Of a stretch of DNA of 64,000 bases, positions 1-64,000 are shown one piece after another. The stretch lies in NCBI RefSeq assembly GCF_963676685.1, contig NC_092345.1, positions 8,184,001 through 8,248,000 of the forward strand, written 5' to 3'. Position 1 is the stretch's first letter; the number at the start of each line of letters is the position of its first letter. The position numbers and the translations under genes are program-made. The notes under the pieces were generated by a model. It had not been told where the DNA came from, searched no databases, and was given only the letters and a program-made list of their open reading frames with translations. The DNA is from Mytilus edulis. Lineage: Eukaryota.

Positions 1-792
1 GTTCAGGTGTGTGTGGTTAGGTTTTAGACTTACTGTTAGGTGTTTGTGGTAAAGTTTTAGACTTACTGTTTAGGTGTTTGTGGTTAAGTTTTAGACTTAC
101 CGTTCGGGTGTGTGGTTAGGTATTAGACTTACCGTTCGGGTGTGTGTGGTTAGGTTTTAGACTTACCGTTCAGGTGTGTGGTAAGTTTTAGACTTACTGT
201 TTGAGTGTTGTGGTTAAGTTTAAGACTAACCGTTCGGGTGTGTATGGTTAGGTTTTAGACTTACCGTTTGAGTATGTATGGTTAGGCTTTAGACTAACCG
301 TTCGGGTGTGTGTGTTTAGGCTTAAGACTTACTGTTCAGATTTGTTTGGTTATGCTTAATACTTATCGTTCGGGTGTGTGTAGTAAGGTTTTATATTTAC
401 CGTTCGGATGTGTGTGGTTAGGTTTTATAACTTGCCATTCGGGTGTGGTGGTTAGGTTTAAGACTTACTGTTCGGGTGTGTGTTGTAAGGTTTTAGTCTT
501 ACCCTTTGAGTGTGTGTGTGATAATGTTTAGACTTACCATTCAGGTGTGTGTGGTTAGGGTTAAGAATTACCGTTCGGGTGTGTGTGGTTAGGCTTAAGA
601 CTTACCGTTTGAGTGTTTGTGATAAGGTTTTAGACTTACCGTTCGGGTGTGTGTGGTTAGGTTGTAGACTTACCGTTCGGGTGTGTGTGGTTAGGTTTTA
701 GACTTACCGTTCAGGTGTGTGTAGATAGGTTTTAGACTTACTTACCGTTTGAGTGTTTGTGGTTAGGTTTTATACTTACCGTTCGGGTGTGT
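1..792 (-). repeat. ~34-bp tandem array (>=22 copies, truncated by window edge) made of the exon end plus splice donor of the LU gene
   Basis: Sense-strand unit acacacccgaacg|gtaagtctaaaacctaaccac; its first 13 nt equal the last 13 nt of exon 894-780. Confidence 0.9.
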
Positions 793-3700
793 ACACGATT
801 GATTATTACATTTGTCTGTAGTGCAACACTTCTCACAAACGTGTAACTGTCCAGTTCTCTTCCCAAAACCTTCTTGATCTGCTACTTTACACAACTATAA
901 AACGACAACTTGATAATAACCAGTCAAACTGATTAGAATATAGATAATGTGTCCATGTTAAAGGGATAACTTAACCAGACATAACTTAACGTATGTATAC
1001 ACAGCTAAAATGGTAATACCTGGTATTATAGAAGAATAAAAAAAAAATATGTAGATTTTGTCTGTGTTTGATTTTTCAAGATCTGAGAAAGGCAGCCATC
1101 TTTATTCGTGTATATTTCACCCTAGTTTGTTCAATAAACACATTTGCGTGCACATCGATTCGGCAAGCAAACAAAAAATTGCCAAAATAAAAATTTATGA
1201 ATTAATTATGGTTAAAGAAAACACATATGTTGTCACTTTTTTAATTGATGAACTGTCATTAAATAACGGCATTCCAAATTAAACGTTTTATTGGAGATCA
1301 TGTAAAAATCGGACAGTAACTTGTATCTTTTACCAGATTTGAATTTATTATACTCAGTCTAAGACGTGTAGTTTTGGAGCACATTTTACAGAGTACGGCT
1401 TATCTGTTTGCGATGCTATGTACCAATCGACATTAGATTTATCGAAACCCTTTGATAGTATTGAAAATATGCCGAGGCGATGTTTTCGACAGACTAACAG
1501 AGCCAATCACCCTGAAAACACGCCAAAACAGCATTGGAAAGTCTCGTTATAGTTTGCGTCCACACACGTAGACAGGGGCGTAGCTAGAAGAAAACGATGG
1601 GCAAGCAACTACCCAATTTTTGGACCCTTTAATGCAGAAAAAATGTTTTTTTTTTCGGTTTTCGGTCATAGGACGGTTTAAAGAGGAGCTACATGTAGAT
1701 AGGACTTATAAACACTTTATGAATGTATAACTAATAATACTTGAATCTTCTGAATAGAGTAAATCATGGTTAATTTAATACATAAACAACACATTTTTGA
1801 ATTACAGAATTTACTCAACATTGACCAAAATCTGCTCTTCGGGTCTAAGCAGAAACGAACTTCTCCCAGACTTTAGACTACAGACTTAATACATTGATAG
1901 ATCTGCATGGTGGCACTCGCGAGATGTTATAAACCAGCGTACGTATTCTCTGTCGAGCGACCTCCCGATTGAAATTGTCAAAATACATGCCAGGTCATTT
2001 TGTATGTCTCATACAATGTTGAGAATTATTCGTGGGTTATATTTCCTACAACACAACACGAGGAAGCAGATACGACACAAAGAAGCTATTTTCTGATAAT
2101 ACCAGACACTCTCGAATTCCATTATCATATGGTCTACCGTCATTATACATAATGCAACATAAAGTCAAGGAGACAAATTATCTCATCAATCAATACATCA
2201 TCCCATCAATCAATAAATCATCCCATCAATTAATAAATCATCCGTGCAATCAATAAATCATCCCATCAATCAATAAATCATCCGTGCAATTAATGAATCA
2301 CCCGTGCAATCAATTAATCACCCGTGTAATCTATGAATCACCAGAGCAATCAATGAATCACCCGTACAATCAATTAATCACCCGTGCAATCTACAAATCA
2401 TCCGTGCAATCTACAAATCATCCGAGCAATCAATGAATCATCCGAGCAATCAATGAATCATCCGTGCAATCAATTAATCATCCGAGCAATCAATGAATCA
2501 TCCGAGCAATCTATAAATCATCCGAGCAATCAACCAATCAATCTATCAATCTATAAAGCATTCGATAAATCAACAGATCAATCGATTAACTAATAAATCA
2601 TTTGATCAATCAATAAATTAAATGATCAATCAATAAATCATTTGGTCAATCAATAAATAAATAAGTCGACCAATAAATAAATCAGTCGATCAATCAACAA
2701 ATCTGTTAGTCAATCCGATACAGTTTTAAGAATGTAAGGCTAACCGATTCATTTACTTGTTGTTTTCCTTAACATTAGAGTTTTTAAATTTTATTGTGTG
2801 CGTGTTCCCTGAATTTATGAAATGAAAACACAGTAGATGAAGAAAGAATAAAGAGGGGGAAAAAAAAGATAAAACCATTTTAATAAAATATTTATACTGA
2901 CCTGGCTAGATTTACATCCAACGTTATAAAAAACGTATAAATTATCATCTATCACTTGTTCTGTATAGCATTGCTAGAAGAGGAAAAATATGAATAAAAT
3001 GAAGTAGTTCTTAGTCTAGTTTATACACAAAGTGAAACTGTAAAGATTTGCAAACGAACAACACAAATCGGCTACATCCTTCGTTCTCAGTGATTGTAAA
3101 CATGCACCAAACCAGTTACACCACTCATACTCAATGATTGAGTACATGAACCAAACCAGTCACACCATTCATACTCAGTGATTGAGTACATGAACCAAAC
3201 CAGTTATACCACTCATACTCAGTGATTGTATACATGAACCAAACCAGTTACACCTATCATACTCAGTGATTGTATACATGAACCAAACCAGTTACACCTA
3301 TCATACTCAGTGATTGTAAACATGAACCAAACCAGTTACACCTATCATACTCAGTGATTGTATACATGAACCAAACCAGTTACACCTATCATACTCAGTG
3401 ATTGTATACATGAACCAAACCAGTTACACCTATCATACTCAGTGATTGTAAACATGAACCAAACCAGTTACACCACTCATACTCAGTGATTGTATACATG
3501 AACCAAACAAGTTACACCACTCATACTCAATGATTGTATACATAAACCAAACCAGTTACACTACTCATACTCAATAATTGAGTACATGAACCGAACCAGT
3601 TACACCACTCATACTCAGTGATTGTCTACATGAACCAAACCAGTTACACCACTCATACTCAGTGATTGTATGCATGAACCAAACCAGTTACACCACTCAT

Positions 3701-6700
3701 ACTCAGTGATTGAGTACATGAACCAAACCAGCTACACCTATCATACTCAGTGATTGTAAACATGAACCAAACCAGTTACACCTATCATACTCAGTGATTA
3801 TATACATGAACCAAACAAGTTACACCACTCATACTCAATGATTGTATACATAAACCAAACCAGTTACACCACTCATACTCAATGATTGAGTACATGAACC
3901 ACACAAACCGGTAACACCACTCATAATCAATGATAGAATCCATGAACCACTCAAACCAGTAACACCACTCATACTCAATAACTGAATTCATGAACCACAC
4001 AAATCAGTTACACCACTCATACTCAATAATTGAATACACGAACCACACAAATCAGTTACACCACTCATACTCAATAATTGAGTACATGAACTAAACCAGT
4101 TACACCACTCATACTCAGTGATTGTATACATGAACCACACAAACCAGTTACACCACTCATAATTAATGACTGAATACATGAACCACACAAACCGGTTACA
4201 ACACTCATACTCAATGACTGAATACATGAATCACACAAACCAGTTACACCACTCATACTCAATAATTGAATACCTGAACCACACAAACCAGTAACACCAC
4301 TCATACTCAATAATTGAATACATGAACCACACAAACCAGTTACACAACTCATAATTAAGGATTGAACACATGAATCACACAAACCAGTTACACCACTCAT
4401 ACTCAATAATTGAATACATGAACCACACTAACCAGTAACACCACTCATACTCAATAATTGAATACATGAACCACACAAACCAGTTACACAACTCATAATT
4501 AATGATTAAATACATGAACCACACAAACCAGTTACACCACTCATAATCAATAATTGAATACATGAACCACACAAACCAGTTACACCACTCATACTCAATG
4601 ATTGAATACATCAACTACACAAACCGGCTGCACTACTCATACTCAATGATTGAACACGTGAACCACACAAACCGGTTACATCACTCATACTCCATGATTG
4701 AACACATGGACCACACAAACCGGTTACACCATTTATACTCCACGATTGAACACATGGACCACACAAATCGGTTACACCACTCATACTCAATAATTGAATA
4801 CATCGACCACACAAACCGGTTTCACCACTCATACCCAATTATTGAATACATGAACCACACAAACCAGTGACACCACTCATACTCAATGATTGAATACATG
4901 AACCACACAAACCGGTTACACCACTCATACTCAGTGATTGAATACATGAACCACACAAACCAGTTACACTACTCATACTCAATGATTGAATACATGAACC
5001 ACACAAACCGGTTACACCACTCATACTCAGTGATTGTATACATGAACCAAACTGGTTACACCACCCATACTCAATGAGTGTATACATGAACCACACAAAC
5101 CAGTTACACAACTCATACTCAATGATTGAATACATGAACCACACAAACCGGTTACACCACTCATACTCAATGAGTGTATACACGAACCACACAAACCAGT
5201 TACACCACTCATACTCAATTATTGAATACATGAACCACACAAACCAGTAACACCATTCATACTCAATAATTGAATACATGAACCACACAAACCAGTTACA
5301 CCACTCATACTCAATAATTGAATACATGAATCACACAAACCAGTTACACCACTCATACTCAATAATTGAGTACATGAATCACACAAACCAGTTATACCAC
5401 TCATACATAATGATTGAATACATGAACCACATAAACCGGTTACAACACGCATGCTCAATAATTGAATACATGAACCACACAAACCAGTAACACCACTCAT
5501 ACTCAATAATTGAATACATGAACCACACAAACCAGTTACACCACTCATAATAAATGATTGAATACATGAACCACATAAACCAGTTACACCACTCATAATT
5601 AATGATTGAATACAAGAACCACACAAACCAGTTACACCACTAATAATCAGTAATTGAATACATCAATCACATAAACCGGTTACAACACTCATACTCAATG
5701 ATTGAATACATGAACCACACAAACCGGTTACACCATTCATACTCAATGATTGAATCCAGGAACCACACAAACCAGTTACACCACTCATATACATTGATTG
5801 TATACATGAACCACGTGCATGCAAACCAGTTACACCACTCATACTCAATTATTGAATACATGAACCACACAAACCAGTTACACCACTCATACTCAATTAT
5901 TGAATACATGAACCACAAAAACCAGTAACACCACTCATACTCAATGATTGAATACATGAACCACACAAACCGGTTACACCACTCATACTCAGTGATTGAA
6001 TACATGAACCACACAAACCGGTTACACCACTCATACTCAGTGATTGAATACATGAACCACACAAACCGGTTACACCACTCATACTCAGTGATTGTATACA
6101 TGAACCAAACTGGTTACACCACTCATACTCAATGATTGAATACATGAACCAAACCGGTTACACCACTCATACTCAATGATTGAATACACGAACAACACAA
6201 ACCGGTTACACCACTCATACTCAATGATTGAATACATGAACCACACAAACCGGTTACACCACTCATACTCCATGATTGAACACATGAACCACACAAATCG
6301 GTTACACCACTCATACTCCATGATTGAACGCATGAACCACACCGATTACACCACTCATACTCTATGATTGTAAACATGAACTACACTAACTGATTCCAAT
6401 GTAGACAAACCATCAAAGACTACATACCTCTCCTGGTGAACATTGAGTGGTCTGGATACAGTACCTTGGTTCAAACACTCCTTGACACGAAAGACATCGT
6501 AAACCTTAACATACAGAAAAATATATGTTACTTTTAAATCAAACGAAAAAAAAATATAATACGATCGCGAGAGGCGGATCCAGGGTGTCGACAGATGCAC
6601 GTCACAGCCCCCTTAGCAAACACATTATCAAATTGACAGAATTAAAATAAAATATTGAGAATTTTGTACTTGAAATACATTAATTAATTCTCAGATAAAA

Positions 6701-8026
6701 AAAATGTTAATTAAGATAAAAAAAATATTAAGGCATTCAGAAGTCCACATAAAAAAAATGTAAGAAGGAAAAAAAAATTACACATGGTGTACATGTTGAA
6801 TCGTGTACTTTAATGTAATACCCTTTCAGCAGACAAACTTGTGTTGGTGCATTCGGAATTTCCCAATTATGAAATGGGCTCCTTATTATAATTTTCCTAT
6901 CACAAAAACTTACCAATTGCTTCGGGGTATACAGCCGCTGTAAAACAAAAATACTTTCCAACATTACATTATACCGACAAGTTCAAATCATTATAAACAA
7001 ACAATAGAATGTTTACAGAGCTAGAAAATATGGTTATAGGCTTATAGCATAAAAAGTAATGTAAAATAAGAAGGTGTGATTGTTCTTAATTTTAACTTGT
7101 TTTAATACTTGAGATATCTGGGGCCCTTTATAGCTTGCTGTTCCAATCCGTTGAACCCTAATTTTTCACTGACATTCCTAATATCCCGCCTATCTTCCCC
7201 GTCGAACCCAAATTGCAGGACCTAACTAGTGTATTTACTATTAAATTGTTCGCAAAAAAGTGGTATGCAGAGTTGGTAACAATACGTTCGTTTTATTGTT
7301 CTGGTTCTATCTTGTAGTATATACAACTTACATTAATTATATAAGATGTGTACAAAATGTGACTTGGATGGAGAGTTGTCTAATTGGTTTATATTAATTG
7401 GTCGTTGCTTGCCTAACAGTTTTAAATTTCATTGTGTAAATGCGTTATCAAATCATTATTTAGAATCTTGTTATGTCAACGTGAAGTTTACCCTCAAGGA
7501 ATTATGGGATCAATAAATAATCTTATTCATATTCTTAGTACTTGGAAAACTAATAGTTTAATCTTTCCAATTACTAATGTGGCTTCCATGCCAGGATGTT
7601 CATGGCTTTTATAACGTTACATATGGAATAGACAAAAGAAAGTTCTTCGATTTTGACGGTATATATACCGACCCTTAAATGTATTTCCACTTCAGTATGT
7701 GTGTTTGTATGTATTCGTTGTTAATCGACAAGGTGCCCCGGGTTATGGAATTGTTCCAACTCATCACATTGTATGAATATTTTCAGTATGCATCCTGATT
7801 TTGATTTATTCCTAGTAAAGATGACAATTTTGTTCATTTGGTACATCTTATCCAGCAGTGCCTTCTTTCTTTCATGATCCTGTAGCTTCGTTTTTTATTT
7901 TAAAATTTGTCAGTTGTTAGTCTATCTAGTTATAGTTTCTTCGATTGTTTTGCTTAAGTTTGTTAGGTGTAAATAAACGTAAGAAAGTCACTTACCGAGA
8001 AAGAGAAGCACGTATTTCAATTCCAT
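780..8026 (-). CDS. Secreted Ly6/uPAR (three-finger, LU-domain)-like protein, 5' part; gene continues beyond the left window edge
   Basis: Hand-spliced GT-AG exons with compatible phases: 8026-7996, 6937-6914, 6504-6428, 2973-2902, 894-780. They give MELKYVLLFLAAVYPEAIG-LRCLSCQGVFEPRYCIQTTQCSPGEQCYTEQVIDDNLYVFYNVGCKSSQLCKVADQEGFGKRTGQLHVCEKCCTTDKCNNQSCTHPN. Features are a hydrophobic signal-peptide-like N-terminus, an LxCxxC start and a CCxTDxCN end, typical of LU domains. None of this is in the ORF track. Confidence 0.8.
2180..2710. repeat. Degenerate 20-bp minisatellite built on (ATCA)n
   Basis: Repeats of caatcaatgaatcatccgag / caatcaataaatcatcccat decaying into ATCA-rich sequence. Confidence 0.85.
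3085..6390. repeat. 44/48-bp intronic minisatellite (~70 copies)
   Basis: Unit actcatactcaatgattgaatacatgaacc(acac)aaaccagttacacc. 44-bp units dominate ~3085-3900 and 48-bp units dominate afterwards. It fills nearly all of LU-gene intron 3. Confidence 0.95.
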
Positions 8027-9462
8027 GTCTCTGAGCGAAAGTGATAAGAGAAGTTGAACTAGGACAATACTATCTGTACAATTTTAATCAAGAATTAATG
8101 TCAGGTAAATTCCACGATAAAATACCTGAAATTTGGCATTTCAACTTCAGATATACATAAAAACAATTGTTTGACTAATCATGGCTTTCGAAAATAATGA
8201 AATGAAGAGTCGTCTTCGTATTTAATGACATCGACATAAATTAATTGGTACTAACTTTTTTCGACAAATTCAACAACTTACATGTATATTTAACAGTCTA
8301 TCTTGAAATTGACAGGACAACCATTGATGATATTCTTGATTTGAACAGAACAGGCAAGCGAACGTATTGCATGTTCATGCGTTTTTCAACCCTTCAAACC
8401 CGACCACTAACAGAACAAAATTCTGATGAAGTCCGTGGAAAAGTACAGATAAAATAATAACACTGATACCGTATTAAACAATGTTACCAGTACGTGTAAT
8501 AGAAATCAAGCCGTTGCTGGTCCTTTAATAAAAATGTCTAGTACATAGGAAGCTGCATTATATTTAGTACATTTCATGCAGCATCGCCATACACAGTATA
8601 AGAAGAAATGTTTTGTTTAGGTATTGCTTACAGTAAATGTACTAAATTGTGTCATAGTAATCTCAGTTTCAATACCGAAAAATGAAAGAAACGTCTTAGG
8701 ATCTCTTACTTTTCACGTTCAGTGTTTCAAACTACATTTGTCACGTAAAGCAACCAACAATCAATCAATCAATCAATCATTTGTCACCAAAAATATCCGA
8801 AGCACTGAATTGTTCAACAATAGTATAACAATATTCTCTATCAACCTGTTTGATGTCCCAAATGGACAGACTTAAATGACTTTGCCCAAACTTCAAGCTT
8901 TCACTATATTAATGAGTGTTGCTGTGTCAAAGGATTGATGTGAAATACCAAGTTTTACCCATTTATCGAGGGAGGAAGCAGTGTACATGATGTGCCAAAA
9001 TCGTTCCTTTTTCCATATATGAAAAAGAATACGAATAATGTGTAATATCAAGGCAAGGATCTGTCACTTAGATTGCATGGTTTTCTCTTCTTTTTAGAAT
9101 TTACAAGTCATTTATACATCAGTCAAATTCGATTTTTAAATAAGTATAGCTGTTTTCAACCGATTTAAGACAGATGGGAAAGCCTGGTTGTTTTCTGCTT
9201 TAACGTAATCCGATTTTTGTATGAGTTCAGTTGTGTTTTTCTTTGCGAAACTGCTTTCCCCAGAAAACATTCTAACCTAATTACTTTGACTACAAAAAAA
9301 ATATTCCGGATATATACATCGCCATTACCGTGTTTGTAAAAAATATATATATAAAATTCATCCAATGAAATCGTTCGACACATACGCTTAGCAACACGAC
9401 GCCATCAACTGCTGCATAATATTTTTAATTTAAAAAACCGATTAATTTATCAAATTTCCGTT

Positions 9463-12400
9463 ATGGATCAAACAAAAAGACCCCTCCTTATTCCCCCAGA
9501 GTTCGGAACATATGCCGAGAAACATGGAATATTCGATTTATATAAGGTTTGAATATAAAACGTAGATTTCTTATATATAAGTTATATTTTATTTCCACAG
9601 CCACAAGCACGTAAAGTAAATGATAACCATGTTACTATTTTGTCTACTTATAGCAATAATTATGAAATGATGAATGTCACTTTTAAGCTGAATGATAATT
9701 CACTAGTAAATTTGTTCTTTCAGGACAGGTTCTTAATGACTAGACTATTGAATTGCCATACTACTGTGACAGGATCACAGGCACTTGTTTCTATCCAATG
9801 GAAGACCCACTTTGGAAGACCCACTATCAATGTATATTTCGTAAATATACGTTGATAGTGGGTCTTCCAATGGATAGAAACAAGTGCCTGTGGACAGGAT
9901 CGCTTCCCTTAGAAAAACTTAGTAGATACTTAGTCAACCGTAAGCGGTTGAGCTAAGGAAGAACTTCTTTAGCTCAGTCGGTTAACGCGCTGCCTTGTAA
10001 CACAGAGGTCCCGGTGGAGACATGCGATTTTGCAAGTAAAATCATGCTCAGCTCTCCGGTTACACTACATACATGTATCTTTTCACAAGAACTATTCAAT
10101 ACACCTTATTGCTATTTGACCGCCATTACTGGAGATCACATAGGTTCCCGTAAGATTTTGATGTCATAAAACAAAATATCTGACACCACAATGGAAAAGT
10201 GATTGTTGTATGCGTCAAAAGTTCAAGCGGCTGGGATTAGCGATACGGTGTATAAGAACTTAAAATTAATATCTTACTTACATAGTCTTACATAGTCTGT
10301 AACTCAGCGCTGGATCACTCCACTATGCTCAAATCTTTAGTTATTTGCTGACTTGTTTCGGTTCCGGTTCCTGTGTCAGCTTTTGCTCTATAGTTATATT
10401 TCATTTCACTATTTGTCCAATATTTATCTAGGCGGCTTTCAAATGTCTGAATAGTTGGTGCATTTACAACGTTGCTGGGTAAGCTGTTCCATATTGGTGC
10501 AATTCGTTGTGTGAAGAAGTTAGATCTTATGTTTTTGTTGCATCTTTGGATAGTCAGTTTTTTGTTGTGTCCTCTAGTAGCAGAAGTGGTGTTATATGTG
10601 AGTAGGTTAGGTAACGCTTCGTCATATATTCCCGATGTTAATTTGTAAGCTTCTATCATATCACCTCTCATTCGTCTGTATTTAAGTGTTGGTAATTTAA
10701 GCTTCTTCAACCGTTGTTCATACTCAGATCTTTCAATGTTGGTATCAATTTTGTTGCTCGCCTTTGAACATTTTCAAGTGCTGTTATATCTTTAACTTTG
10801 AATGGGCTCCATATAGCATTGGCATATTCGAGGTTTGGTCTTGCTAATGCTTTATAAAGTAATAAGAACATTTCCTCATTGAGGCAGGTAAATGTCCTTC
10901 TAATTAGTCCCATAATACTATTGGCTTTATTTATTTTTTCATTCATATATGTTGTTCGAAATTTAGTTTGTTATCAATGGTTACTCCTATGTCTTTTTCT
11001 TTGTCAACATGTTCTAGTGTGGTGTTACACAGGTTGTATTTATGGTTGTTAGCATGTTGTTTCCCTGTTGTTAGGACTTTACATTTATCTGGGTGAAATC
11101 TTAGCAACCAAGTATTTGACCAAGATTCTAGATGAGATAAGTCTGTCATATCTAGGAAGATCATCACATTACCTCTCTTGAATCAATGTGTTAAAAAAAT
11201 CAGCTCAAGGATGCATACTATTACTTAACCAAATACACATAAATATATATATATATATATATACAATAGTGTTACAGACTAATTACATGTATATGCCTGT
11301 ATTGTAATAAAGAAATAAAACTCTACACTTTGTGTTGTGTTACTTTTATGATCAAAATCTATATCGAAGGCCCCAAACAAAGGTAAACGTCATAAACATA
11401 TTAAAGACATAAATACGGTAAACATAACGTTAACATTTGCATTATATTCTCAACAATGTCATTGTTACACGTTGCACCTGCAGGATGAAGCAATATGTTG
11501 ATCAGAAACTAGAGAGCACCTACTACATATAGATGTACATGTAGAGACTAGTGTTGTGTACAGTAGTATCATTTAAGATGATATATATATCTTAAGTGAA
11601 ATGTGGACTGTAAATATTGTAAAAAAGATACTAATTACTATTATTAGTAAAATATGGACTATAAATATTGAAAAAAAGATACTAATTACTATTATTAGTA
11701 AAATATGGACTGTAAATATTGAAAAAAAGATACTAATTACTATTATTAGTAAAATATGGACTGCAATTATAGAAAATAGATATATCATTTAAGTGAAATA
11801 TGGACTTTAAAAATATAAACTTTTTTTTTAACATTAATTTATTCATCTATGCTTTATTTAAAATGAATCAATGATCATAACTTTAGAAAAAAATGGAGAT
11901 ATGTAATGACTTTAATTGGGAGTTACAATGTTATAATGTAGTTAATTATACTTTCAGAGACTAATGGAACAGTTATTAATCAACAAACCCTCAGATCCAT
12001 TAGTATTTCTGGTGGAATTACTGAAGAGGGACAACAATGATGGTATGGATTGTTTGATCAACGATTTACTGGCACTTTAAGCAGTGGTTTACTGCTATTT
12101 TTTTTAAGAAAAATAATTGTCTAATCACTTTATTTGCTGTAAATGTAAATTCTTGTTTGTTCAAATGTTGAAATTTTTCCAAAACATGACATGGCTTAAA
12201 CAAAAGATATTTGGCATTTTATTTTATAAAAAATACATTTGTTCAATTGATGATGTGATACAGCTTTTACAACCTATATTATTTAAATTCAAACACACAT
12301 AGTTACAGATAAGTCTTCTTTTTCTTAAACAAGATAAAAAAATTATAAAATATCATATATGTTTGAGGTAATAATTAAATGACCATACAAAAAGAGACCT

Positions 12401-15400
12401 GCTCTTAATTCAATAATTGTCAAATTCTGAATGTATGTTTAAATCTTCAGCAATAAAAAAAATTCTAAATTCCTATCAATTTGTAAAATTAATGGTGTGA
12501 CTTGAATTAAACTTAGGTTGTAATTATTGTGATGTTCATTGGGCATTACAAACCTTTTTTTCTTCAATTTGTTTTATGGAGAGATATATATATATGTTCC
12601 GGACCATATGAGTATTTGGACCATACGCGTATGGTCATGACATACGCGTATGGTCGGGGTAATTAACACTCTGTTACAGTTTACTTTTAATACTTCTAAA
12701 CTCTTCATATGGTATGACCGTTCATTCAAAAGACGCTATCATATAGGTAATTTTATCGTTATATTATAATAAAAAGATAAGCTAAATAAAAATAAGAAGT
12801 TTCACATTGTTAATTTTACTTAATTGTCAAATTTAAAGTAAACACATTTTATACCGATGGTCATTACCGATGGTCATAACCGATTTGTTATTACGAGTAA
12901 ATGGCAATATGTTGACTAAAAAATTAAATTCCAAAAATTTCTTAATGAACTGTTACATAAGAAGTCACTGGAAAGTAGCATACTATTAGTTTATTTAAGT
13001 TGTGTTGTGAAGATGGTGTATTGCAGTCAACCATTTTACGATATTTGAGATCTAGAGCTTCTTAAAAACACTGTAGACATCAGAATTGCCAAAGACCTCG
13101 GTATCACTGTACGCAGCTGCAAAAAAGGCTTGTTTTTCACTCGCAAACAAAATGTGTAAATGAAAAAGATCGTGCACAAAACTTGCAAAAGCTATGATAC
13201 CGTGTGGAAGTGAATGTCATCCAAGCCTACATGCACTAATGTAACTAGCGATGAAAACTAACTATGGCATCAATATTAAATTTTTACGTAGTTTTTTTTA
13301 TTATAAAATTAAAAAATTGTCATGTTTTAAACCATCACTGTTTTTTTAGATAAAGTTCTTGTATTATTGAAACGTTTATAATGTAATTTGGAAAAATAAA
13401 TATACCTATATATGGTCCAAATACTCATATGGTCCGGCCCGTTAATAACCAAACGAGTATTATACTCATATGGTCCGACCATACGCGTACGGTCGGACCA
13501 TACGCGTATGGTCGGACCATATGAGTATACGCATATGGTCATGACCATACGCGTATGGTCCAAATACTCATATGGTCCGGAACATATATACATATACAGC
13601 TCTTAAATAGAAAAGCTTTATTAAAAAATAATTTTGTTTTCTACTTTCAGTTCCTCAAGTAATAATTCTAGGACCTCCAGCCTCTGGTAAGAAGACAATA
13701 GCCAAACTTTGTTCCAATAAACTAAGAACTGCACACCTGACAGAAGACAATATGGTTGCTGAAGCTGAAACAGACACCAAAGTTAAAGTACAGGAGATGA
13801 TAAAAAAGAGACAGGTATTGCATCACAGACCAGCTGTGTATAAACAAAAGGAGTGTACACTCACTGAAAAAAGTACAATCACAAAACTAAAAAAATAGAC
13901 ACCTCTTTCAGCTTTCAGAATAAATTTTAAAACCACATGCCCAGAGCTCTCAATCTTTGGAAAATTTGAGTTAACTTAGATTATGCTGGCATTTAGAGAT
14001 CATTTTTACAGGCCTGAAAGCATTTTAAAAGCCTAGGTGCTTGGTCTTTTATTAACATGAAGTTCATAGATAGTTTATATTGATGCACCATAGTAAGACT
14101 GTCTTTACAGAACATGTATCTGTGAGAGTTTGAAACAATTCTTGTAATGACATGAAATTGTTCAAATTCATTTTTGCACTGTTTATCACATTTGTTTCTC
14201 AGTTCATAGTAGTAACTTGTTGATGGAAAATTATCAGATACTTTTCCCTGAATCATTATTTTGTGAACTCTTTCAATTCTGTAATCTCAAGATATAGTTA
14301 TCAATAAATCATAAGCAGTCAAACATTTAACCACCATAATACTTTAGATCCTTAGATTCCTACTTATTTTCACAGGTTGTTCCAACAGAAGTATGGGTTA
14401 AGATATTGACTGACAGGATGAAACTGGCTGACTGTATAAAGAAAGGCTGGGTCATGGAAGGATTTCCTCAGACTAGAGAACAAGCTTTAGCACTACAAAC
14501 TGCTGGTGTTTATGCAAAACACACAGGTATGTCAAATATAGAAGAAAAAATCTGCAAGTGGAACACTATAACTGTTCCTCATGTGTACTTGATATGGTAG
14601 GTTGGGGGTGTGGCCCGTGTGGGGAATGTGTTCCAACTTTGTAAAAAAAATCTGAGCATGTTCATATTAGTAGGTTTATTTGATCAGGACTTAATTCTTC
14701 TGTGGTTGCTGGTCTGTTTGATATCCAATGCAGTTCTCAAATCCATTAATGAAATTTATGTAAAAGCCAGATTCTTAATTACATATGTACTTTACTTGGC
14801 AAATATTCATTAGTATTGGAATATCAAAGCACTAACTTGTATATATATATACAAGTAAATTTGTATAAAAAAGATCTGATATGAAATACCATATGAACTG
14901 TAATAAGATTGAAGATTAACATTTTCTCTTAAAATGGCAAATTATTTAAGGAATGACTAATATTTTTTCTGTCTATGAAGAAATAACTTTAAAAATGTGG
15001 TGCACACTGAATAACACGCGTTAAGGGTTATTTACAGTGTGCACCACATTTTTATGTTATTTCGAGTAGACTGACAAAATATTACAGTTATTTCTTATAA
15101 TTCAATTCTAAATTCCATTTTAAACAAACGTAAATCATTAAAAAACTTTGATGATGGTCACATGGCAAAATTGTGTCTAAGATATGATAAACAAAACAAT
15201 GTCAGCCAATCAGAAGACGCGTTACATCTAAAACTAAATTATTATGAAATAACAAAAAATGTGGTGCACACTGAATAACACGCGTCAAGGGTTATTTACA
15301 GTGTGCACCACATTTTTATGTTATTTCGAGTAGACTGACAAAATATTACAGTTATTTCTTATAATTCAATTCTAAATTCCATTTTAAACAAACGTAAATC

Positions 15401-18400
15401 ATTAAAAAACTTTGATGATGGTCACATGGCAAAATTGTGTCTAAGATATGATAAACAAAACAATGTCAGCCAATCAGAAGACGCGTTACATCTAAAACTA
15501 AATTATTATGAAATAACAAAAAATGTTCTAGTAGATGGTATCTTAGAAATATATATGTAAAAAAAAACACGTATCTTGATTACATGCATTACTTAATAAA
15601 TTCCAAACAACTTGTACATGTTTGTATAATGAAAATTTTGTTTATATTTCAGTTATATTAGATGCACCAGACACTGTGTTGATTGAGAGAGCCCAAGGTA
15701 AAAGGATTGATCCAAAGACAGGAGACATTTACCATACTACATTTGATTTACCTACAAATCCTGAGATCCAGGGACGTCTAGAAGAAGTTCCAGGTTACAA
15801 AGAGGAAGAAATGGTACAAAAACTGATAGAATATCATCGCCATATTGATGGAGTGCTAGATTGTTACCAGAAGACAGTTAAAACTATCAATGCTGATCAG
15901 CCTAAAGCTGATGTCTTCTCACAAGGTAAAATATTTAAAAATTGTTTGTATGGTATACAAGATTGGTGAAAGATACCAAATTAAAGAGATAATCAAACTC
16001 ATAAGTAGAGAAGGAGCTGGCAATGCCATGGCAAAAAATAATGAAAACCCACAGGTTTGGTTTATAAGATCCTGATTGGTAATATTGTTAAACCTAATAT
16101 TTACATTGATGAATGTTTCACATTTCTATTGATCTTTTATGGTTTACATAAAAAGTTTTTCACTCAGGACAGTGTTCTCCCCAGAAATTTTGGATAGCAT
16201 CACATTTTGCGTAAAAAAAATAACTGTATTTTTTTTAATGTCGTTTGTCGCGTCGCGTTGATACTCTATTTCCTTTATATGTTTGAGTTTATATTGTTCA
16301 ATTCATAACTGAGAATACAATTAAACTATAACCACAAAAACAGTTGTTTCAGTTTATGTTTTCTTTATTCATTTATTGTTACAGAATTATTTTTTTCCTC
16401 TTGTGCCAAATAAAAATAAATATGTGGTTTCAGTTACCCAACAATGAGTCAAATGAATGAATGGTTCATTATAGATCAACCTGTTTATATACAAAACTAA
16501 ATATCTAGTACACAAAATTAACTATTTTTATATTATATCAAGTAAAGATAAAGTAGCAAAAGTAGCAAAAAAAAATCTATTTAAAAACTTTTTTTATCAT
16601 GTTTATGAAATTCATTGTTTCATGGCACTCAATAAATTAGTCCCAGTTGTTTCTTATCTTTACATCAAAATGATATGTATTTTTAACAAAGTTATCTAAC
16701 AAATAGTCTGTTAATGCGTAGTTTTCTCTCTTGGTATATTTTTTCTGTCTACTGTCCATCTGTTGTCATTATCATGAAAATGCGGATTTTTGTCATATCT
16801 GGTCCGGTTTACACAAGTATGTGCAATGGCGGCCGTAGAAAAATTTACGAAAATGAGTCCGAGAATAAACATTGTTTGACAAGAGATTGTGAATGAATAA
16901 GACGCTTTTAATGCAATAAATGAATTAAACATAGACTTAAGCCAATTATGATAACTTTTTAAAGAAGTATTAAACTTAGTTTAGCTCTAAACCAAAATTC
17001 TCGCTCTCGTATTACCGGAAGAGAAAGAAAGTAATTTTTGGAAAGATGCACAAATAAAGGACCTTTTTTAAAAAAAAATAAAAATCGTTTCAATCTGTGA
17101 AATTTCGTATTACAAAACGTAAATTTCGAAATGTTTTGTGATTGCATTTTTCCATGTCGAAATTGGTGATTGAAGACACGTGGTATTAGTCATGTCACAA
17201 GTGTCAGCTTGGCTTGGGATATTCGCATCCAAACAGTTATCACCCTGAGGGCAATTAACACCTAGCTATTTAATCTCTTATTTGCCTTTAGTGTCCGACT
17301 TAAAGGGATTACAATTAAAGGTGATATAATTTTTATGATCATAATCGATAATAAATGAAAGTTCAAAATTGAGGACAAGTAAAATAGCATCTTCAAAATA
17401 ATTATAGCATCGCGGGAATAATTATAGCGTCGCGGGAATTATTATAGCATCACGGTGAAAAAATATAGCGTCGCGGTACCGCGACGCTAAAACAGCCTGG
17501 GGAGAACACTGCAGGATTTTGAGCTATATCTTTTGCTATATTCCTTTCAATTTTTGTCCAAAAGTGATCTATTTATTATATTACATTGCCAGCATAACAC
17601 TAAACTATAACAGTTTGTAAATTATTAATTCATGATCAAAATTCTTATCCAACATAATAGCATATGCAATTGATTTTTAAATTTTGATTACAGTACATTG
17701 ATAGTACATGTACATTGCAGCTGTAACCTATGTCCAATGGTTATGTATTTTATTTTAAATGGCTTGATTATTTTACTTTATATTTTCAGTATACACATAC
17801 CTATGTAGAAACCCAAGATCTAATGCACCACACACCCCAAGAATTGTGTTACTGGGACCTACAGGTTCAGGGAAAGGTGTCCAAGCAGCTCTCCTGGCCA
17901 ATAAATATAACATTGTTAATGGTATGTATTAGACAGGTTGAACTCGAACAACAGTATTAGTATGACTAACAAGATTGGCCTATTAATATAATTAATAGAT
18001 GTATACATGTTTGTGTGTCTTAGAACATCAGAGTCAATTCAGATGTAAAGGGTACTTACTTAAACTTTCCCATGTATCTTGTAAATAAAAAGATAAATTA
18101 AATCATATCACATATTTCCTTTTATCCTATTAATTTCTTCTTGTTAATGAAACAAACCATGATAGATAAAAAATGTTGCCAGACAAACAATTTACTGTGT
18201 AAAAAGCCTTTGTTATATTTGAACACACCTTTTTCATTTTTCAGTATCATGTGGACAGTTGGTGAAACAATCCATAGCAGATGAAACTGACCAAGGAAAA
18301 GCTTCAATACCTTATGTGGACAAAGATATGATGGGTAAGAAACAAACTTTTTTTGGAATCTTGTATATTTTTTTTACCTCTAAATGTCTAATTTTATGGA

Positions 18401-22250: not shown

Positions 22251-46790
<24,540 letters not shown>

Positions 46791-49645: not shown

Positions 49646-49949
49646 AGATGGAAGCAACATAAAGTGAAATCATAGACAGAAATAAACACCCATTCTTACC
49701 AATACAATTGCCCAATTTCAACTTGTGACATTTTTTTTAAATAGGCTCCATACAAAGATAAAACCACCTCACACGTGTAAAATTTAAAAAGCAGGCCAAC
49801 ATTGCCAACAACTGTCAACTCTTTGCACATATGAATGCTGAGTTAAATCCACAAAGTAAGTGCAAAAAATTGTCCCACTGGCATAGGAATCATATAGTAT
49901 AGGGGGATAGTAGATTTTAAATACCCAGTGTTCTTCTGTCCTCTGTGCA

Positions 49950-57000: not shown

Positions 57001-59744
57001 CACATCCACCCTTTCTGTAATTTGGTATCAACATTTATATATGTTAGCCATACCGTGTGATGCGTTTTCAGATTCATCACTTGACAACTTCCTGTTTACC
57101 GAACACTTGTATGATTTTACACATGATAGCCAAGTTGAAAATTTTCGTCACATTTTTCTCAGCAACTACAATACAAGGATTTCTGAAATTTGGTTTCAGG
57201 ATTTATATAAGTCAGCTATACCGTGTGATGCGTTTTCAGATTCATCACTTGACAACTTCCTGTTTACCGAACACTTGCATATTTTTACACTATTAATATT
57301 ATCCACTTGCGGCGGGGGTATCATCAGTGAGCAGTAGCTCGCAGTTTCACTTGTGTATATTGGTTTTAGATGCATACCAATGGATGATAAAAGACTGGAG
57401 AAAAATGTTTAATGTTTTTGATAACTGAAGGACACTCATATTTTTAAAAAGAACATGACCAGTATACATGACCAGTATACCAGCTGAAGGACGCCTCCGG
57501 GTGCGGGAATTTCTCGCTACATTGAAGACCTGTTGGTTACCCTCTGCTGTTGTTTTTTATTTGGTCGGGTTGTTGTCTCTTTGACACATTCCCCATTTCC
57601 ATTCTCAATTTTATGGTATAGTTGTAATAGTCAGTTTCTATTTTTTGTAATTCTGAATAAACTATGTGGAGTTTAAAGTACTGTTTTTTCCATATCAATC
57701 TTCTAATTTTCTTCACAAAAAAGAAATACCTTATAGATTTGCGAATGGAAATGGGGAATGTGTCGACAACAAACTGACTAAAGAGTAAAAAATGCAGATG
57801 AAGGCCACAGCAAGATAATCCTGCAACTGGAGGAGGACCTCTGCTGGCTCCTAAACAAAAATGTATTTTTGCTATCAAAACTTGTAACTTGGTTAATGGA
57901 AATGACTCTGTGATCTTTACATGGAGATGTAGGAAAAATGACAGCCTTGTGAAAAATGGACAACTATGATTATTTTTCTTTTCTGTAGGTCACTGGTGGT
58001 GGTGATACCAGTATCAGATTGTGGAAACTTAATGTTGCAGAAAACCAATCAGTGAATAAGTTACATAGTCAAAGTCTACCATTCCAGAATGAAAATGTAA
58101 GTACCTGACTTGAACAGCTATAGGTAAATTATCTCAGTGCATACTTCATTGAAAAAAATCCAATTCCGAAATTTTTATCTCAAATGGATGTCAATGTTAA
58201 TTGTGTAAAAAATATATGGGTTGGATGTATATGAGACAACAGATAAAACCCACAATGAGCCATTGTATTTAAAAGATATAATTATGCTCTCATTGCCATT
58301 CTCTTCTTGGTGACATCACTTTCACCATTCTGGGGTTATGCCCCTTAATAACATTATATGCAAGACGGGCATCATCTGTGTCCCATGTCTCCATTTTGTC
58401 CCTCACTGCTTGACATAACTTTAAACAAACAGAAGAACACAACATTGAGTATATTCAAAACAGATGAGGAGTTTTACAAATAGATAACACTTGCTAATTC
58501 CTATTTTTGTTTTACAGGATTTTGTTAGAGTTGTGTCCCTTTGGAAATCAGATTATGTTATAGGAATTACAGATGAAGGGTAATTATAAACATGTGACCT
58601 TGAACTGGCAATATCTTAATAAGAAAATACTGAAAGTATGTGGATGGCAAATATATACTTCTTTCATAGAACATTATTATGCCTTCTCACACACTAATAC
58701 CAGCTGTCATACCTCTGAATAGATTTTCTAAAGGAATGTCAAGAACAGTTAGAAAAACAACTTTTCATTAGTTCAGAGCTTTTAGAATTTCAACATCACA
58801 GTAACTGATAGGTTTGTAACCAAGATAAGGAAATACATCTGTTCAGACTAAGTAGAACAGTTTAGATAGTGTTGCCAAAAATGGTTCTGAAAGCACCATG
58901 TTCTTTTTGAAGGGTAGAATGGTATACAAATAATAAATTTTAGTGGCCAAATTCATGTTAAAATTTGTTGTTTTAATTCAATGTTTTATTTTGCAGGTCA
59001 CTTTTGATCCATAGCTTAATAGATAATAAAACCTCAGTGATATTTAAAGATCCTAACTTTAAATCGTATACCGTGATAGCAGTATCCCATGTGATAGCTC
59101 TAGGGAATATCAAAGGGACTATACGTCTTGTATATTCAGGTAAATATTATATAGAGCAGTAACAATATTCCAGCTTTTAATTTTGAGGAACATCAGAGGA
59201 ATTCTATAGGCCTTTTATAATGCTGACTATACAGTATAAATATTGCTTGTTGTTGAAAGGACATACAATGACCTAAAGTTGCTTAAATCTGCACATTTGC
59301 AATCACACCTCATATACTTATTTTGTAATGAGCAGACTGATTTTCTTTTAAAGCTTTATAAAATTGACAAAAAAAGTTTAGGAATCTTGCTTATAAATAA
59401 AGTTTGTTATGAAGTTTTATCATGCATTGCAATTGACACAATAAAAATATTATTTGATCTATCAATTCCCAGTATTTTTTCAATAGACCAAACTCTGCCT
59501 TAACTATTGTCTTCAAGTGCCAATTTTAAAATTTGTTTATTTAAGTGAACAAACCTGTTTAGTGTTGCTAGTATTACACATACATTTAAGTAAATTGATC
59601 ATGTTTAGAATTTTGTGATTTTCAGAGAATCTGACCGACATGAAGTTTAGATGGACTGATTATGATATCTATAAAGGGAAAGTACTCTCTATCCACTGGC
59701 TGTCAGAAGATCTTTTGTTAACCACTGGACCAGACGGACTTATT
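51003..59744 (+). CDS. WDR6: WD-repeat protein 6 (Trm734-like tRNA methyltransferase partner), 5' part; continues beyond the window
   Basis: Exons 51003-51078, 52902-53000, 53369-53499, 53838-53944, 54560-54707, 55376-55615, 55897-55959, 56812-56859, 57989-58096, 58518-58579, 58997-59139, 59626-59744, phase-compatible. Motifs GPVTAL, FALAHN, LAAGTVTNQVLLW, GHQGVIFS, SVSDDRSIRIW, GHSARVW, SIGEDS, GHKGKSIWSL, TGGGDTSIRLW and GKVLSIHW...TGPDG match the WDR6 family pattern as I recall it. Confidence 0.85.
51255..51880 (+). mobile_element. Helentron-associated (HINE/DINE-1-like) element
   Basis: ttttatcccccc..ggggcatta start hairpin, gtccgtccgt microsatellite, three degenerate internal repeats (tttatacacaatgc.tattaccaca), and a ggggcatcatatgtgtc end. 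Confidence 0.6.
51915..52690. mobile_element. Probable MITE with degenerate inverted termini
   Basis: gtttgcgcgcatt / gcgcagctttcgattaca at the left pair with tgtaatcaaaagctgcgc / aatgcgcgcaaac at the right. Confidence 0.55.
53945..54559 (+). other. Probable U12-type (minor spliceosome) GT-AG intron in WDR6
   Basis: Donor GTATCCTTA; branch-like tttctttaat ending ~13 nt before the acceptor AG; splicing gives in-frame CEENSIL-YCARF. Confidence 0.7.
56880..57355 (+). mobile_element. Helentron-associated (HINE/DINE-1-like) element inserted ~20 nt after a WDR6 donor
   Basis: ttatacccccgc..ggggggtata start, (GTCY)n microsatellite, two ~168-bp internal repeats (ataccgtgtgatgcgttttcagattcatcacttgacaacttcc), subterminal inverted gcgggggtat, and 3' stem gtgagcagtagctcgc. 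Confidence 0.7.
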
Positions 59745-62700
59745 GTAAGTATGTTGATATCTATAAAGGGAAAGTACTCACTATCCACTGGCTGTCAGAA
59801 GATCTTTTGTTAACCACTGGACCAGACGGACTTATTGTAAGTATGTTGATATCTATAAAGGGAAAGTACTCTCTATCCACTGGCTGTCAGAAGATCTTTT
59901 GTTAACCACTGGACCAGACGGACTTATTGTAAGTATGTTGATATCTATAAAGGGAAAGTACTCTCTATCCACTGGCTGTCAGAAGATCTTTTGTTAACCA
60001 CTGGACCAGACGGACTTATTGTAAGTATGTTGATATCTATAAAGGGAAAGTACTCTCTATCCACTGGCTATCAGAAGATCTCTTGTTAACCACTGGACCA
60101 GACGGACTTATTGTAAGTATGTTGATATCTATAAAGGGAAAGTACTCTCTATCCACTGGCTGTCAGAAGATCTTTTGTTAACCACTGGACCAGACGGACT
60201 TATTGTAAGTATGTTGATATCTATAAAGGGAAAGTACTCTCTATCCACTGGCTGTCAGAAGATCTTTTGTTAACCACTGGACCAGACGGACTTATTGTAA
60301 GTATGTGGATATCTATAAAGGGAAAGTACTCACTATCCACTGGCTGTCAGAAGATCTTTTGTTAACCACTGGACCAGACGGACTTATTGTAAGTATGTGG
60401 ATATCTATAAAGGGAAAGTACTCTCTATCCACTGGCTGTCAGAAGATCTTTTGTTAACCACTGGACCAGACGGACTTATTGTAAGTATGTTGATATCTAT
60501 AAAGGGAAAGTACTCTCTATCCACTGGCTGTCAGAAGATCTTTTGTTAACCACTGGACCAGACGGACTTATTGTAAGTATGTGGATATCTATAAAGGGAA
60601 AGTACTCACTATCCACTGGCTGTCAGAAGATCTCTTGTTAACCACTGGACCAGACGGACTTATTGTAAGTATGTGGATATCTATAAAGGGAAAGTACTCA
60701 CTATCCACTGGCTGTCAGAAGATCTTTTGTTAACCACTGGACCAGACGGACTTATTGTAAGTATGTTGATATCTATAAAGGGAAAGTACTCTCTATCCAC
60801 TGGCTATCAGAAGATCTTTTGTTAACCACTGGACCAGACGGACTTATTGTACATTTGTAAGTATGTTGATATCTATAAAGGGAAAGTACTCTCTATCCAC
60901 TGGCTATCAGAAGATCTTTTGTTAACCACTGGACCAGACGGACTTATTGTAAGTATGTGGATATCTATAAAGGGAAAGTACTCTCTATCCACTGGCTGTC
61001 AGAAGATCTTTTGTTAACCACTGGACCAGACGGACTTATTGTAAGTATGTTGATATCTATAAAGGGAAAGTACTCACTATCCACTGGCTGTCAGAAGATC
61101 TTTTGTTAACCACTGGACCAGACGGACTTATTGTAAGTATGTTGATATCTATAAAGGGAAAGTACTCTCTATCCACTGGCTGTCAGAAGATCTTTTGTTA
61201 ACCACTGGACCAGACGGACTTATTGTAAGTATGTTGATATCTATAAAGGGAAAGTACTCTCTATCCACTGGCTATCAGAAGATCTTTTGTTAACCACTGG
61301 ACCAGACGGACATATTGTAAGTAAGTTGATATCTATAAAGAGAAAGTACTCTCTATCCACTGGCTATCAGAAGATCTTTTGTTAACCTCAGGACCAGACG
61401 GACATATTGTAAGTATGTTGATATCTATAAAGGGAAAGTACTCTCTATCCACTGGCTGTCAGAAGATCTTTTGTTAACCACTGGACCAGACGGACTTATT
61501 GTAAGTATGTTGATATCTATAAAGGAAAAGTACTCTCTATCCACTGGCTATCAGAAGATCTTTTGTTAACCACTGGACCAGACGGACTTATTGTAAGTAT
61601 GTTGATATCTATAAAGGGAAAGTACTCACTATCCACTGGCTATCAGTAGATCTTTTGTTAACCACTGGACCAGACAGACTTATTGTAAGTATGTTGATAT
61701 CTATAAAGGGAAAGTACTCTCTATCCACTGGCTGTCAGAAGATCTTTTGTTAACCACTGGACCAGACAGACTTATTGTAAGTATGTTGATATCTATAAAG
61801 GAAAAGTACTCTCTATCCATTGGCTATCAGAAGATCTTTTGTTAACCACTGGACCAGACGGACTTATTGTAAGTATGTTGATATCTATAAAGGGAAAGTA
61901 CTCTCTATCCACTGGCTGTCAGAAGATCTTTTGTTAACCACTGGACCAGACGGACTTATTGTAAGTATGTTGATATCTATAAAGGGAAAGTACTCTCTAT
62001 CCACTGGCTATCAGAAGATCTCTTGTTAACCACTGGACCAGACGGACTTATTGTAAGTATGTGGATATCTATAAAGGGAAAGTACTCACTATCCACTGGC
62101 TGTCAGAAGATCTTTTGTTAACCACTGGACCAGACGGACTTATTGTAAGTATGTTGATATATACAAAGGGAAAGTACTCTCTATCCACTGGCTGTCAGAA
62201 GATCTTTTGTTAACCACTGGACCAGACGGACTTATTGTAAGTATGTTGATATATACAAAGGGAAAGTACTCACTATCCACTGGCTGTCAGAAGATCTTTT
62301 GTTAACCACTGGACCAGACGGACTTATTGTAAGTATGTTGATATCTATAAAGGGAAAGTACTCACTATCCACTGGCTATCAGTAGATCTTTTGTTAACCA
62401 CTGGACCAGACGGACTTATTGTAAGTATGTTGATATCTATAAAGGGAAAGTACTCTCTATCCACTGGCTGTCAGAAGATCTTTTGTTAACCACTGGACCA
62501 GACGGACTTATTGTAAGTATGTGGATATCTATAAAGGGAAAGTACTCTCTATCCACTGGCTATCAGAAGATCTTTTGTTAACCACTGGACCAGACGGACT
62601 TATTGTAAGTATGTGGATATCTATAAAGGGAAAGTACTCTCTATCCACTGGCTGTCAGAAGATCTTTTGTTAACCACTGGACCAGACGGACTTATTGTAA

Positions 62701-64000
62701 GTATGTTGATATCTATAAAGGAAAAGTACTCTCTATCCACTGGCTGTCAGAAGATCTTTTGTTAACCACTGGACCAGACGGACTTATTGTAAGTATGTTG
62801 ATATCTATAAAGGGAAAGTACTCTCTATCCACTGGCTTTCAGAAGATCTTTTGTTAACCACTGGACCAGACAGACTTATTGTAAGTATGTTGATATCTAT
62901 AAAGGGAAAGTACTCTCTATCCACTGGCTATCAGAAGATCTTTTGTTAACCACTGGACCAGACGGACTTATTGTAAGTATGTTGATATCTATAAAGGAAA
63001 AGTACTCTCTATCCACTGGCTGTCAGAAGATCTTTTGTTAACCTCTGGACCAGACGGACTTATTGTAAGTATGTTGATATCTATAAAGGGAAAGTACTCT
63101 CTATCCACTGGCTATCAGAAGATCTTTTGTTAACCACTGGACCAGACGGACTTATTGTAAGTATGTTGATATCTATAAAGGGAAAGTACTCTCTATCCAC
63201 TGGCTGTCAGAAGATCTTTTGTTAACCACTGGACCAGACGGACTTATTGTAAGTATGTTGATATCTATAAAGGGAAAGTACTCACTATCCACTGGCTATC
63301 AGTAGATCTTTTGTTAACCACTGGACCAGACGGACTTATTGTAAGTATGTTGATATCTATAAAGGGAAAGTACTCTCTATCCACTGGCTGTCAGAAGATC
63401 TTTTGTTAACCACTGGACCAGACGGACTTATTGTAAGTATGTTGATATCTATAAAGGGAAAGTACTCTCTATCCACTGGCTGTCAGAAGATCTTTTATTA
63501 ACCACTGGACCAGACGGACATATTGTAAGTAAGTTGATATCTATAAAGAGAAAGTACTCTCTATCCACTGGCTGTCAGAAGATCTTTTGTTAACCACTGG
63601 ACCAGACGGACTCATTGTAAGTATGTTGATATCTATAAAGGGAAAGTACTCTCTATCCACTGGCTATCAGAAGATCTTTTGTTAACCACTGGACCAGACG
63701 GACTTATTGTAAGTATGTGGATATCTATAAAGGGAAAGTACTCTCTATCCACTGGCTGTCAGAAGATCTTTTGTTAACCACTGGACCAGACGGACTTATT
63801 GTTAGTATATGTTGATATCTATAAAGGGAAAGTACTCTCTATCCACTAACTGTCAGAAGATCTTTTGTTAACCACTGGACCAGACGGACTTATTGTAAGT
63901 ATGTTGATATCTATAAAGGGAAAGTACTCTCTATCCACTGGCTATCAGAAGATCTTTTGTTAACCACTGGACCAGACGGACTTATTGTAAGTATGTTGAT
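59664..64000 (+). repeat. 92-bp tandem array (>=47 copies, truncated by window edge) = last 81 nt of a WDR6 exon + 11 nt donor
   Basis: Period 92 (gatatctata at 59664, 59756, ...). The first copy is coding DIYKGKVLSIHWLSEDLLLTTGPDGLI followed by gtaagtatgtt. Confidence 0.97.

Follow-up and report, generated by a model that had tools for sequence, protein, structure and literature searches.

Tandem duplications of exon/intron boundaries are known from amphioxus, where these minisatellite-like repeats are called mirages (Canestro et al. 2002). As related in the passages on them in PMC3087553 and PMC3902484, which go back to the original description (PMID 12087171), mirages are found in Adh3, TnC, a retinol dehydrogenase gene, the globin genes BflGb6 and BflGb9, and PGBD5. 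According to the same passages, they occur at 5' and 3' boundaries, have units of 10 to 160 bp, vary in length between haplotypes, and leave splicing undisturbed. One amphioxus mirage was reported to be misassembled in a draft genome. In humans, several variable number tandem repeats (VNTRs) have a first monomer that spans a splice donor, namely, those in intron 7 of F7, intron 2 of IFI6 (6-16), intron 13 of CBS, LMNB2, and intron 4 of PDGF (PMC1557585). The F7 repeat consists of five to nine copies of 37 bp, the first of which spans the donor of exon 7. Of its identical donors, five to nine in number, splicing uses the most upstream alone, and scanning in the 5'-to-3' direction was given as the explanation (PMC1557585). 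Here we describe four tandem arrays in a 64,000-nucleotide stretch of the Mytilus edulis genome (contig NC_092345.1, positions 8,184,001 to 8,248,000 of the forward strand; the whole stretch is referred to below as the window), each of which repeats the end of an exon together with its 5' splice site. The four arrays have the defining features tested for the mirage and F7 kind, and they are new members of it, from a mollusc. We estimate at roughly three in four the probability that they are junction-spanning minisatellites of the mirage/F7 VNTR kind and that such arrays are over-represented at strong donors. The initial annotation of the window knew of no named system of this sort; the amphioxus mirages and the F7, IFI6, CBS, LMNB2, and PDGF repeats share the architecture. 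A literature search found no paper on such arrays in Mytilus.

Arrays in the window were called with Tandem Repeats Finder (TRF). The four that carry a donor in their units are the following.

A1: positions 1 to 792, minus strand; 34-bp unit, 23.4 copies by TRF with 80% matches; at least 23 copies, running off the start of the window.
A2: positions 30132 to 30563, minus strand; 72-bp unit, 6.0 copies by TRF with 95% matches.
A3: positions 41747 to 45106, minus strand; 52-bp unit, 64.3 copies by TRF with 91% matches.
A4: positions 59663 to 64000, plus strand; 92-bp unit, 47 copies by TRF with 96% matches, running off the end of the window.

All four are head-to-tail arrays (periods of 34, 72, 52, and 92 bp), and their copy numbers range from 6 to about 73. 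The highest number is that of A4, which a search of the assembly itself followed beyond the window to G000:C2:8250409 (window-equivalent 66409), giving about 73 copies in total. At one of its ends, each array reaches into a coding exon, and each unit has a strong 5' splice site. Read in the orientation of the gene, and with a slash for the splice site, the donor is ACG/GTAAGT in A1, TTG/GTGAGT in A2, CAG/GTAAGA in A3, and ATT/GTAAGT in A4. The units consist of 13 nt of exon plus 21 nt of intron (the latter starting with GTAAGT) in A1, 62 plus 10 nt in A2, 36 plus 16 nt in A3, and 81 plus 11 nt in A4. The splice signal is repeated along each array, as GT is intact in 20 of 23 copies of A1, in all six copies of A2, in 63 of 64 copies of A3, and in 45 of the 46 A4 donors within the window. 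At full length, A1 has ACGGTAAGT in 9 copies, A2 has six GTGAGTTAAT donors, A3 has CAGGTAAGA in 43 copies and CTGGTAAGA in 19, and 44 of the A4 donors are ATTGTAAGT. The units of the four arrays are unrelated in sequence, and their hosts are three genes on both strands, a cysteine-rich gene (minus), a Ski2-type helicase gene (minus), and a WD40-repeat gene (plus). No acceptor was found inside the units, and no array called by TRF in the window spans an acceptor; the window holds about 40 to 45 introns by a rough count from open frames, which does not rest on an annotation. These results bear out what the initial annotation had read from the window, that is, four unrelated donor-side arrays of one architecture, no acceptor-spanning array, and an exon/intron split of the units that is correct within 1 to 2 nt. 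It had also claimed that reading past the first donor always meets a stop within the first unit. In A1, A2, and A3 this is the case, with stops after 5, 2, and 6 codons, but in A4 the stop comes after 22 codons and falls in the second unit.

The exons that supply the first copy of each array are as follows.

30502 to 30735, minus strand: exon of SKIV2L with helicase motif VI; copy 1 of A2 is made of its final 62 nt and the donor, whose GT is at 30501-30500.
45071 to 45185, minus strand: N-terminal exon of SKIV2L (..NPFWP); copy 1 of A3 is made of its final ~36 nt and the donor, whose GT is at 45070-45069.
780 to 893, minus strand: cysteine-rich exon (..CEKCCTTDKCN..); copy 1 of A1 is made of its final 13 nt and the donor, whose GT is at 779-778.
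59626 to 59744, plus strand: exon of the WD40-repeat gene, with acceptor ttttcag; copy 1 of A4 is made of its final 81 nt and the donor, whose GT is at 59745-59746.

These exons were searched singly, not joined into a spliced model. The frame at 30502-30735 on the minus strand matches residues 658 to 734 of human SKI2W over its full length (E = 1e-37), and the 21 residues that are repeated in A2 correspond to SKI2W 714 to 734. The frame at 45072-45185 on the same strand matches SKI2W alone (human residues 121 to 156, E = 0.005) and ends at the conserved PFWP; the exon that follows A3 begins near 40458. The SKIV2L gene runs on the minus strand from about 46.9 kb to 22.25 kb and is host to two arrays, A2 and A3. 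A neighbor of the A4 exon is a WD40 repeat (PF00400, E = 1e-6), and a feature search, whose score is only a lead, grouped the 40-residue A4 exon with WD40 clusters. Judging from its motif, the cysteine-rich exon at 780-893 may be Ly6/uPAR-like. The names WDR6 and LU domain are unconfirmed, because Pfam gave no match for either the cysteine-rich ("LU") exon or the 40-residue WD40 exon. Across species, the read-through frame of the A4 exon matched nothing, and the SKIV2L exon had no relative above 90% identity. A representative search for the array loci returned exon-sized fragments of at most 55% identity, and the best named protein matches were from Lottia and Octopus. Thus, the statement in the initial annotation that copy 1 is the functional coding exon end holds for A2 by homology and by the RNA results below and for A3 by homology; for A1 and A4 it is suggested by the open frame, the acceptor, and the donor.

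Splicing could be followed for A2, by comparing the region 28200-30800 with one raw RNA run, two RNA contig sets, and one DNA run. The intron that is removed is the following.

28586 to 30501, minus strand: spliced-out intron, from the first donor of A2 to the acceptor before the exon at 28283-28585.

The region has a single exon-exon joint (28584 to 30501, with ends CT..AC on the plus strand). The sequences that show it come from three studies and are a PacBio transcript contig of 3243 nt, an Illumina RNA contig of 3770 nt, and one raw read. No joint from any of the downstream A2 donors was present in these RNA data, RNA depth across the array (30114-30461) is nil or nearly so, and the acceptor is unique sequence 1.5 kb beyond the array. 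As the only joint starts at the first donor and the array has almost no depth, the working donor of A2 is the most upstream one, and the other five copies are intronic. The DNA run, which carries another species label, has contigs that cover part of A2 and shows raised depth on the 72-bp unit. In the same SKIV2L intron, a DNA contig of that run skips 669 bp (window 29332-30000). Repeat depth over this segment is very high, an inverted-repeat joint lies at 29860/29994, and the segment resembles a high-copy transposon or miniature inverted-repeat transposable element whose insertion would be polymorphic.

Compared with the amphioxus mirages, the mussel arrays are alike in that locus-specific, boundary-spanning units of a marine invertebrate repeat the splice signal, and in that they show minisatellite-type turnover with diverged copies at the edge. 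Mirages, however, lie at both boundaries of a handful of genes and have few copies (three to six in the globins), whereas the mussel arrays reach about 73 copies, number four in 64 kb, belong to another phylum, and go together with a measured excess of donor words. The donor-only pattern proposed initially therefore holds for the window, where TRF found no acceptor-spanning array, but not for mirages. Length polymorphism is a feature of mirages, and the mussel arrays are known from one assembly. With the human VNTRs they share a first monomer made of the exon end and the authentic donor, followed by pseudo-donors in the intron, and A2 resembles F7 in that only the first donor is used. In F7, 33 nt of the unit are intron and 4 nt are exon, whereas in the mussel units the exon part is mostly the longer one. 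In IFI6 and CBS, splicing also occurs at the first one or two pseudo-sites after the authentic donor; the RNA compared with A2 has no such joints. In the Rogers model, an intron is gained by tandem duplication across an AGGT proto-splice site (PMC3265369, PMC4974935). There too, a local tandem duplication copies a splice signal, but it lies inside an exon and the new intron arises from two copies, whereas the mussel arrays lengthen an existing intron. Both splice sites would have to come from copies in that model, and here the units are free of acceptors and the acceptor of A2 is unique sequence. Ordinary intronic minisatellites have similar unit sizes, block duplications, and local homogenization, but they differ from the mussel arrays, which are exon-anchored at one end and have a strong 5' splice site per unit.

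The internal structure of the arrays shows how they grew. In A3, the unit patterns 13-23, 33-43, and 47-57 are the same, so that blocks of at least 11 units recur at lags of 14, 20, and 34 units, and three stretches of 156 bp (three units) are 100% identical at distances of 730 and 1042 bp. A2 has exactly six units, of which the distal copy is the most diverged. A4 has no higher-order period, and it is young, because its units are 97% identical in pairwise comparison; A1, with 80% matches, is the oldest of the four. Within the 1.37-Gb assembly, the 92-bp unit of A4 and the 52-bp unit of A3 match their own loci only, and these are therefore not dispersed satellites or transposon-borne repeats, in which the same unit occurs at many loci. 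Together with the lack of relation between the units, this agrees with the independent local origins postulated at the outset. Growth is ordinary minisatellite turnover, for which one founding duplication and generic expansion are sufficient, and the structure of the arrays has no sign of repeated donor-directed events. Rolling-circle copying of a small circle had also been suggested as a source; nothing points there, as the 52-bp array grew by duplicating blocks of 11 units and longer.

Tolerance of extra copies cannot raise the number of arrays at donors above the neutral intronic rate, and therefore we asked, in the window and in the genome, whether there is an excess. The window has 14 arrays with a summed period of 528 bp and about 42 donors in 64 kb. 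If founding duplications are placed uniformly, about 0.35 donor-spanning arrays are expected, against the 4 seen, which is an excess of about 11-fold (Poisson P = 5e-4, without look-elsewhere correction). When the 144 windows of this genome that were annotated are taken into account, P becomes about 0.07, which is borderline when taken alone. For the genome, we searched the whole assembly for three consecutive exact copies of an 8-mer at a spacing of 20 to 50 nt and counted distinct arrays on contigs C1 and C2, normalized to the genome-wide occurrences of the word and with reversed words as controls. Total match counts of these triple patterns were rejected as a measure, as they are dominated by single large arrays. 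The words gave the following counts.

AGGTAAGT, donor: 22 arrays; 38,102 genomic occurrences.
TGAATGGA, reverse of AGGTAAGT: 11 arrays; 73,856 occurrences.
AGGTGAGT, donor: 5 arrays (C1 alone); 15,075 occurrences.
TGAGTGGA, reverse of AGGTGAGT: 1 array (C1 alone); 17,542 occurrences.
TTTTCAGG, acceptor: 9 arrays; 80,590 occurrences.
GGACTTTT, reverse of TTTTCAGG: 8 arrays; 67,874 occurrences.

Donor words are enriched 4.1-fold in arrays over their reversed forms (27 arrays versus 12; exposure share, 0.357; exact P = 2e-5). This contrast is conservative, because one of the control arrays is actually a AGGTGAGT array. Against the three controls pooled, AGGTAAGT alone is enriched 4.0-fold (P = 7e-6), whereas the acceptor word, with a ratio of 0.95, has no excess. 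At position -3, which lies outside the search pattern, 10 of the 22 AGGTAAGT arrays have C, compared to about 16% expected (P = 0.001), and therefore many of these arrays derive from real CAG/GTAAGT sites. If about one-third of the word occurrences are real donors, which is an assumption, the excess per site would be near 10-fold, in agreement with the window. By the word test, arrays on the acceptor side seem to be about as frequent as chance predicts, and those on the donor side more frequent. Two acceptor-word arrays (L021 and L025) were considered as acceptor-spanning and rejected, as they are plain intronic or non-exon arrays.

The enrichment at donors that the initial annotation predicted is thus supported in part, by the word test and by the window. 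Its alternative of a selection filter, in which only donor-side duplications are harmless, can explain why donors exceed acceptors but not why they exceed random positions. The claim that the intron-side breakpoint always lies 10 to 21 nt from the donor is not established as a regularity. With intron parts of 21/34, 10/72, 16/52, and 11/92, and if the donor may fall anywhere in the unit with equal probability, the clustering is not significant (Fisher combined P = 0.17), and the F7 unit has 33 nt of intron.

Several observations from these searches concern other arrays near or resembling splice sites. In a random 200-kb block of the genome, a 47-bp array of three copies (L018:475-623, G000:C2:1170475-1170623) stops 4 nt before an acceptor; its copies have a polypyrimidine tract with TAG after each, and the same intron holds a 45-bp array of 36 copies. 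It was rejected as an acceptor-spanning array, as the alignment supports the polypyrimidine part only. At G000:C4:14152939-14153166, a 55-bp unit contains an acceptor (TTTTCAG/G), about 32 nt of exon-like sequence, and a donor (G/GTAAGT), and from these motifs it looks like a whole micro-exon repeated in tandem with both putative splice sites. An array of at least 8 kb (G000:C1:125944518-125952547) has 56-bp units that each carry AGGTGAGT and accounts for the majority of the matches to that pattern. At G000:C1:2768842-2822772, AGGTAAGT occurs every 1423 bp across about 54 kb, which indicates a long-period tandem repeat or a gene array.

The reading that we prefer, junction-spanning minisatellites over-represented at strong donors, can be put as a sequence of steps. 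Each array would have started as a short local tandem duplication of 34 to 92 bp that by accident straddled the boundary between exon and 5' splice site. It would then have grown through slippage or unequal exchange that involved single units as well as blocks of several units, as the structure of A3 demonstrates. The arrays would be tolerated when the spliceosome takes the most upstream, exon-attached donor, as it does in A2 and probably in the others; with first-donor use, every further copy is therefore intronic, and any read-through into the array would meet a stop codon. The frequency of such arrays would exceed chance about 4-fold at strong donors per genomic word occurrence, as estimated from words on two chromosomes and from the window. 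A number of points weigh against this reading. First-donor use, and with it normal splicing, was found for one array, A2. The exons of A1 and A4 are supported by open frame, acceptor, consensus donor, and gene context, without homology or RNA support of their own. The word test consists of two donor and three control words counted by eye on one or two chromosomes, and its arrays were counted without flanks, so that contact with real exons is not readable. In the random block of 200 kb there are 34 arrays, none of which clearly spans a donor; those at 36688 and 32446 of that block were rejected as donor arrays, as they do not adjoin exons. Finally, the long arrays (3.4 and 6.7 kb) are known from the assembly alone and not from long reads.

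The excess could mean that founding duplications themselves favor 5' splice sites, for example, through breakage or slippage linked to transcription or U1. Such a hot-spot effect would account for the 4-fold enrichment of donor words but not of the acceptor word and for the 4 arrays seen against 0.35 expected, which by our reasoning tolerance alone could not produce, and it fits with the fact that all five listed human cases are on the donor side. However, it has no known mechanism, the breakpoints are not significantly clustered relative to GT, in F7 the intron part extends to 33 nt, the later growth is generic block duplication, and mirages lie at both boundaries. We therefore regard donor-targeted mutation as doubtful. 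Alternatively, arrays at donors may persist because extra U1-binding sites are of benefit, for example, by reducing premature polyadenylation in long AT-rich introns or by aiding exon definition. In favor of this, arrays with donors belong to the largest of the window (23 or more, 64, and about 73 copies), strong intron-side donor halves are present in all four, and donor words are enriched. Conservation of the copies speaks otherwise. Donor positions vary as much as the remaining positions (mismatches of 1.9% versus 1.8% in A4 and 13% versus 17% in A1), the donor is weakened to CTG/GT in 19 of the 64 copies of A3, and the full consensus has been lost in 14 of the 23 copies of A1. A benefit of this kind seems to us quite improbable. 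The broader statement that 5' splice sites, and not acceptors, are genuine hot spots at which minisatellites arise or expand, by about 5- to 13-fold per real donor and driven by either transcription- or splicing-coupled mutation or selection for U1 decoys, is one that we put forward tentatively, as a possibility.

A simpler account needs only chance and tolerance: in a genome rich in minisatellites, the window would be a lucky cluster and the word excess would be confounded. Array density is indeed high (14 in 64 kb here and 34 in the 200-kb block), the P value of the window falls back to about 0.07 over 144 windows, the random block has no donor-spanning array, and the word test rests on few words. 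Set against this are the same 4-fold excess of two donor words over three controls (P = 2e-5 and 7e-6), the fit of the unsearched -3 position to the donor consensus, and the roughly 11-fold excess in the window, and we consider this account unlikely. It is very improbable that the arrays or their lengths were made by repeat misassembly. One amphioxus mirage was aberrantly assembled, and the long mussel arrays are known only as assembled; however, the arrays contain structured variants and duplicated blocks, RNA contigs match the junction of exon and array in A2, and the DNA contigs from the run with the other species label cover part of A2 at raised depth.

If the donor excess holds in an annotation-based test, either donors shape the origin of minisatellites or the gene benefits from arrays of decoy donors, and the literature searched holds no quantification of either possibility. 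If it fails, the arrays are minisatellites of the ordinary kind, tolerated in a genome that is rich in repeats. Under both outcomes they are natural experiments in the choice of 5' splice sites, with up to about 73 identical donors of which only the first is used where this was tested (A2). They are also a possible source of new exons and introns, as in the mirage model, and a pitfall when bivalve genomes are assembled and their genes predicted.

The window contains further repeats. A 48-bp array of 70 copies with strong strand skew (GC skew of about -0.5) occupies positions 3108-6390 and is adjoined by a 20-bp array of 24 copies at 2187-2702. Both lie off obvious exons, and thus large arrays exist away from splice sites too. 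On the minus strand at 10318-11182, three overlapping open frames of 79 to 152 amino acids resemble a retrotransposon remnant, the longest having no Pfam match. A 264-bp unit is present twice, with 99% identity and a palindrome of about 19 bp in each copy, at 14991-15526, in an intron of a plus-strand gene with several adenylate-kinase-like domains (13.6 to 21 kb).

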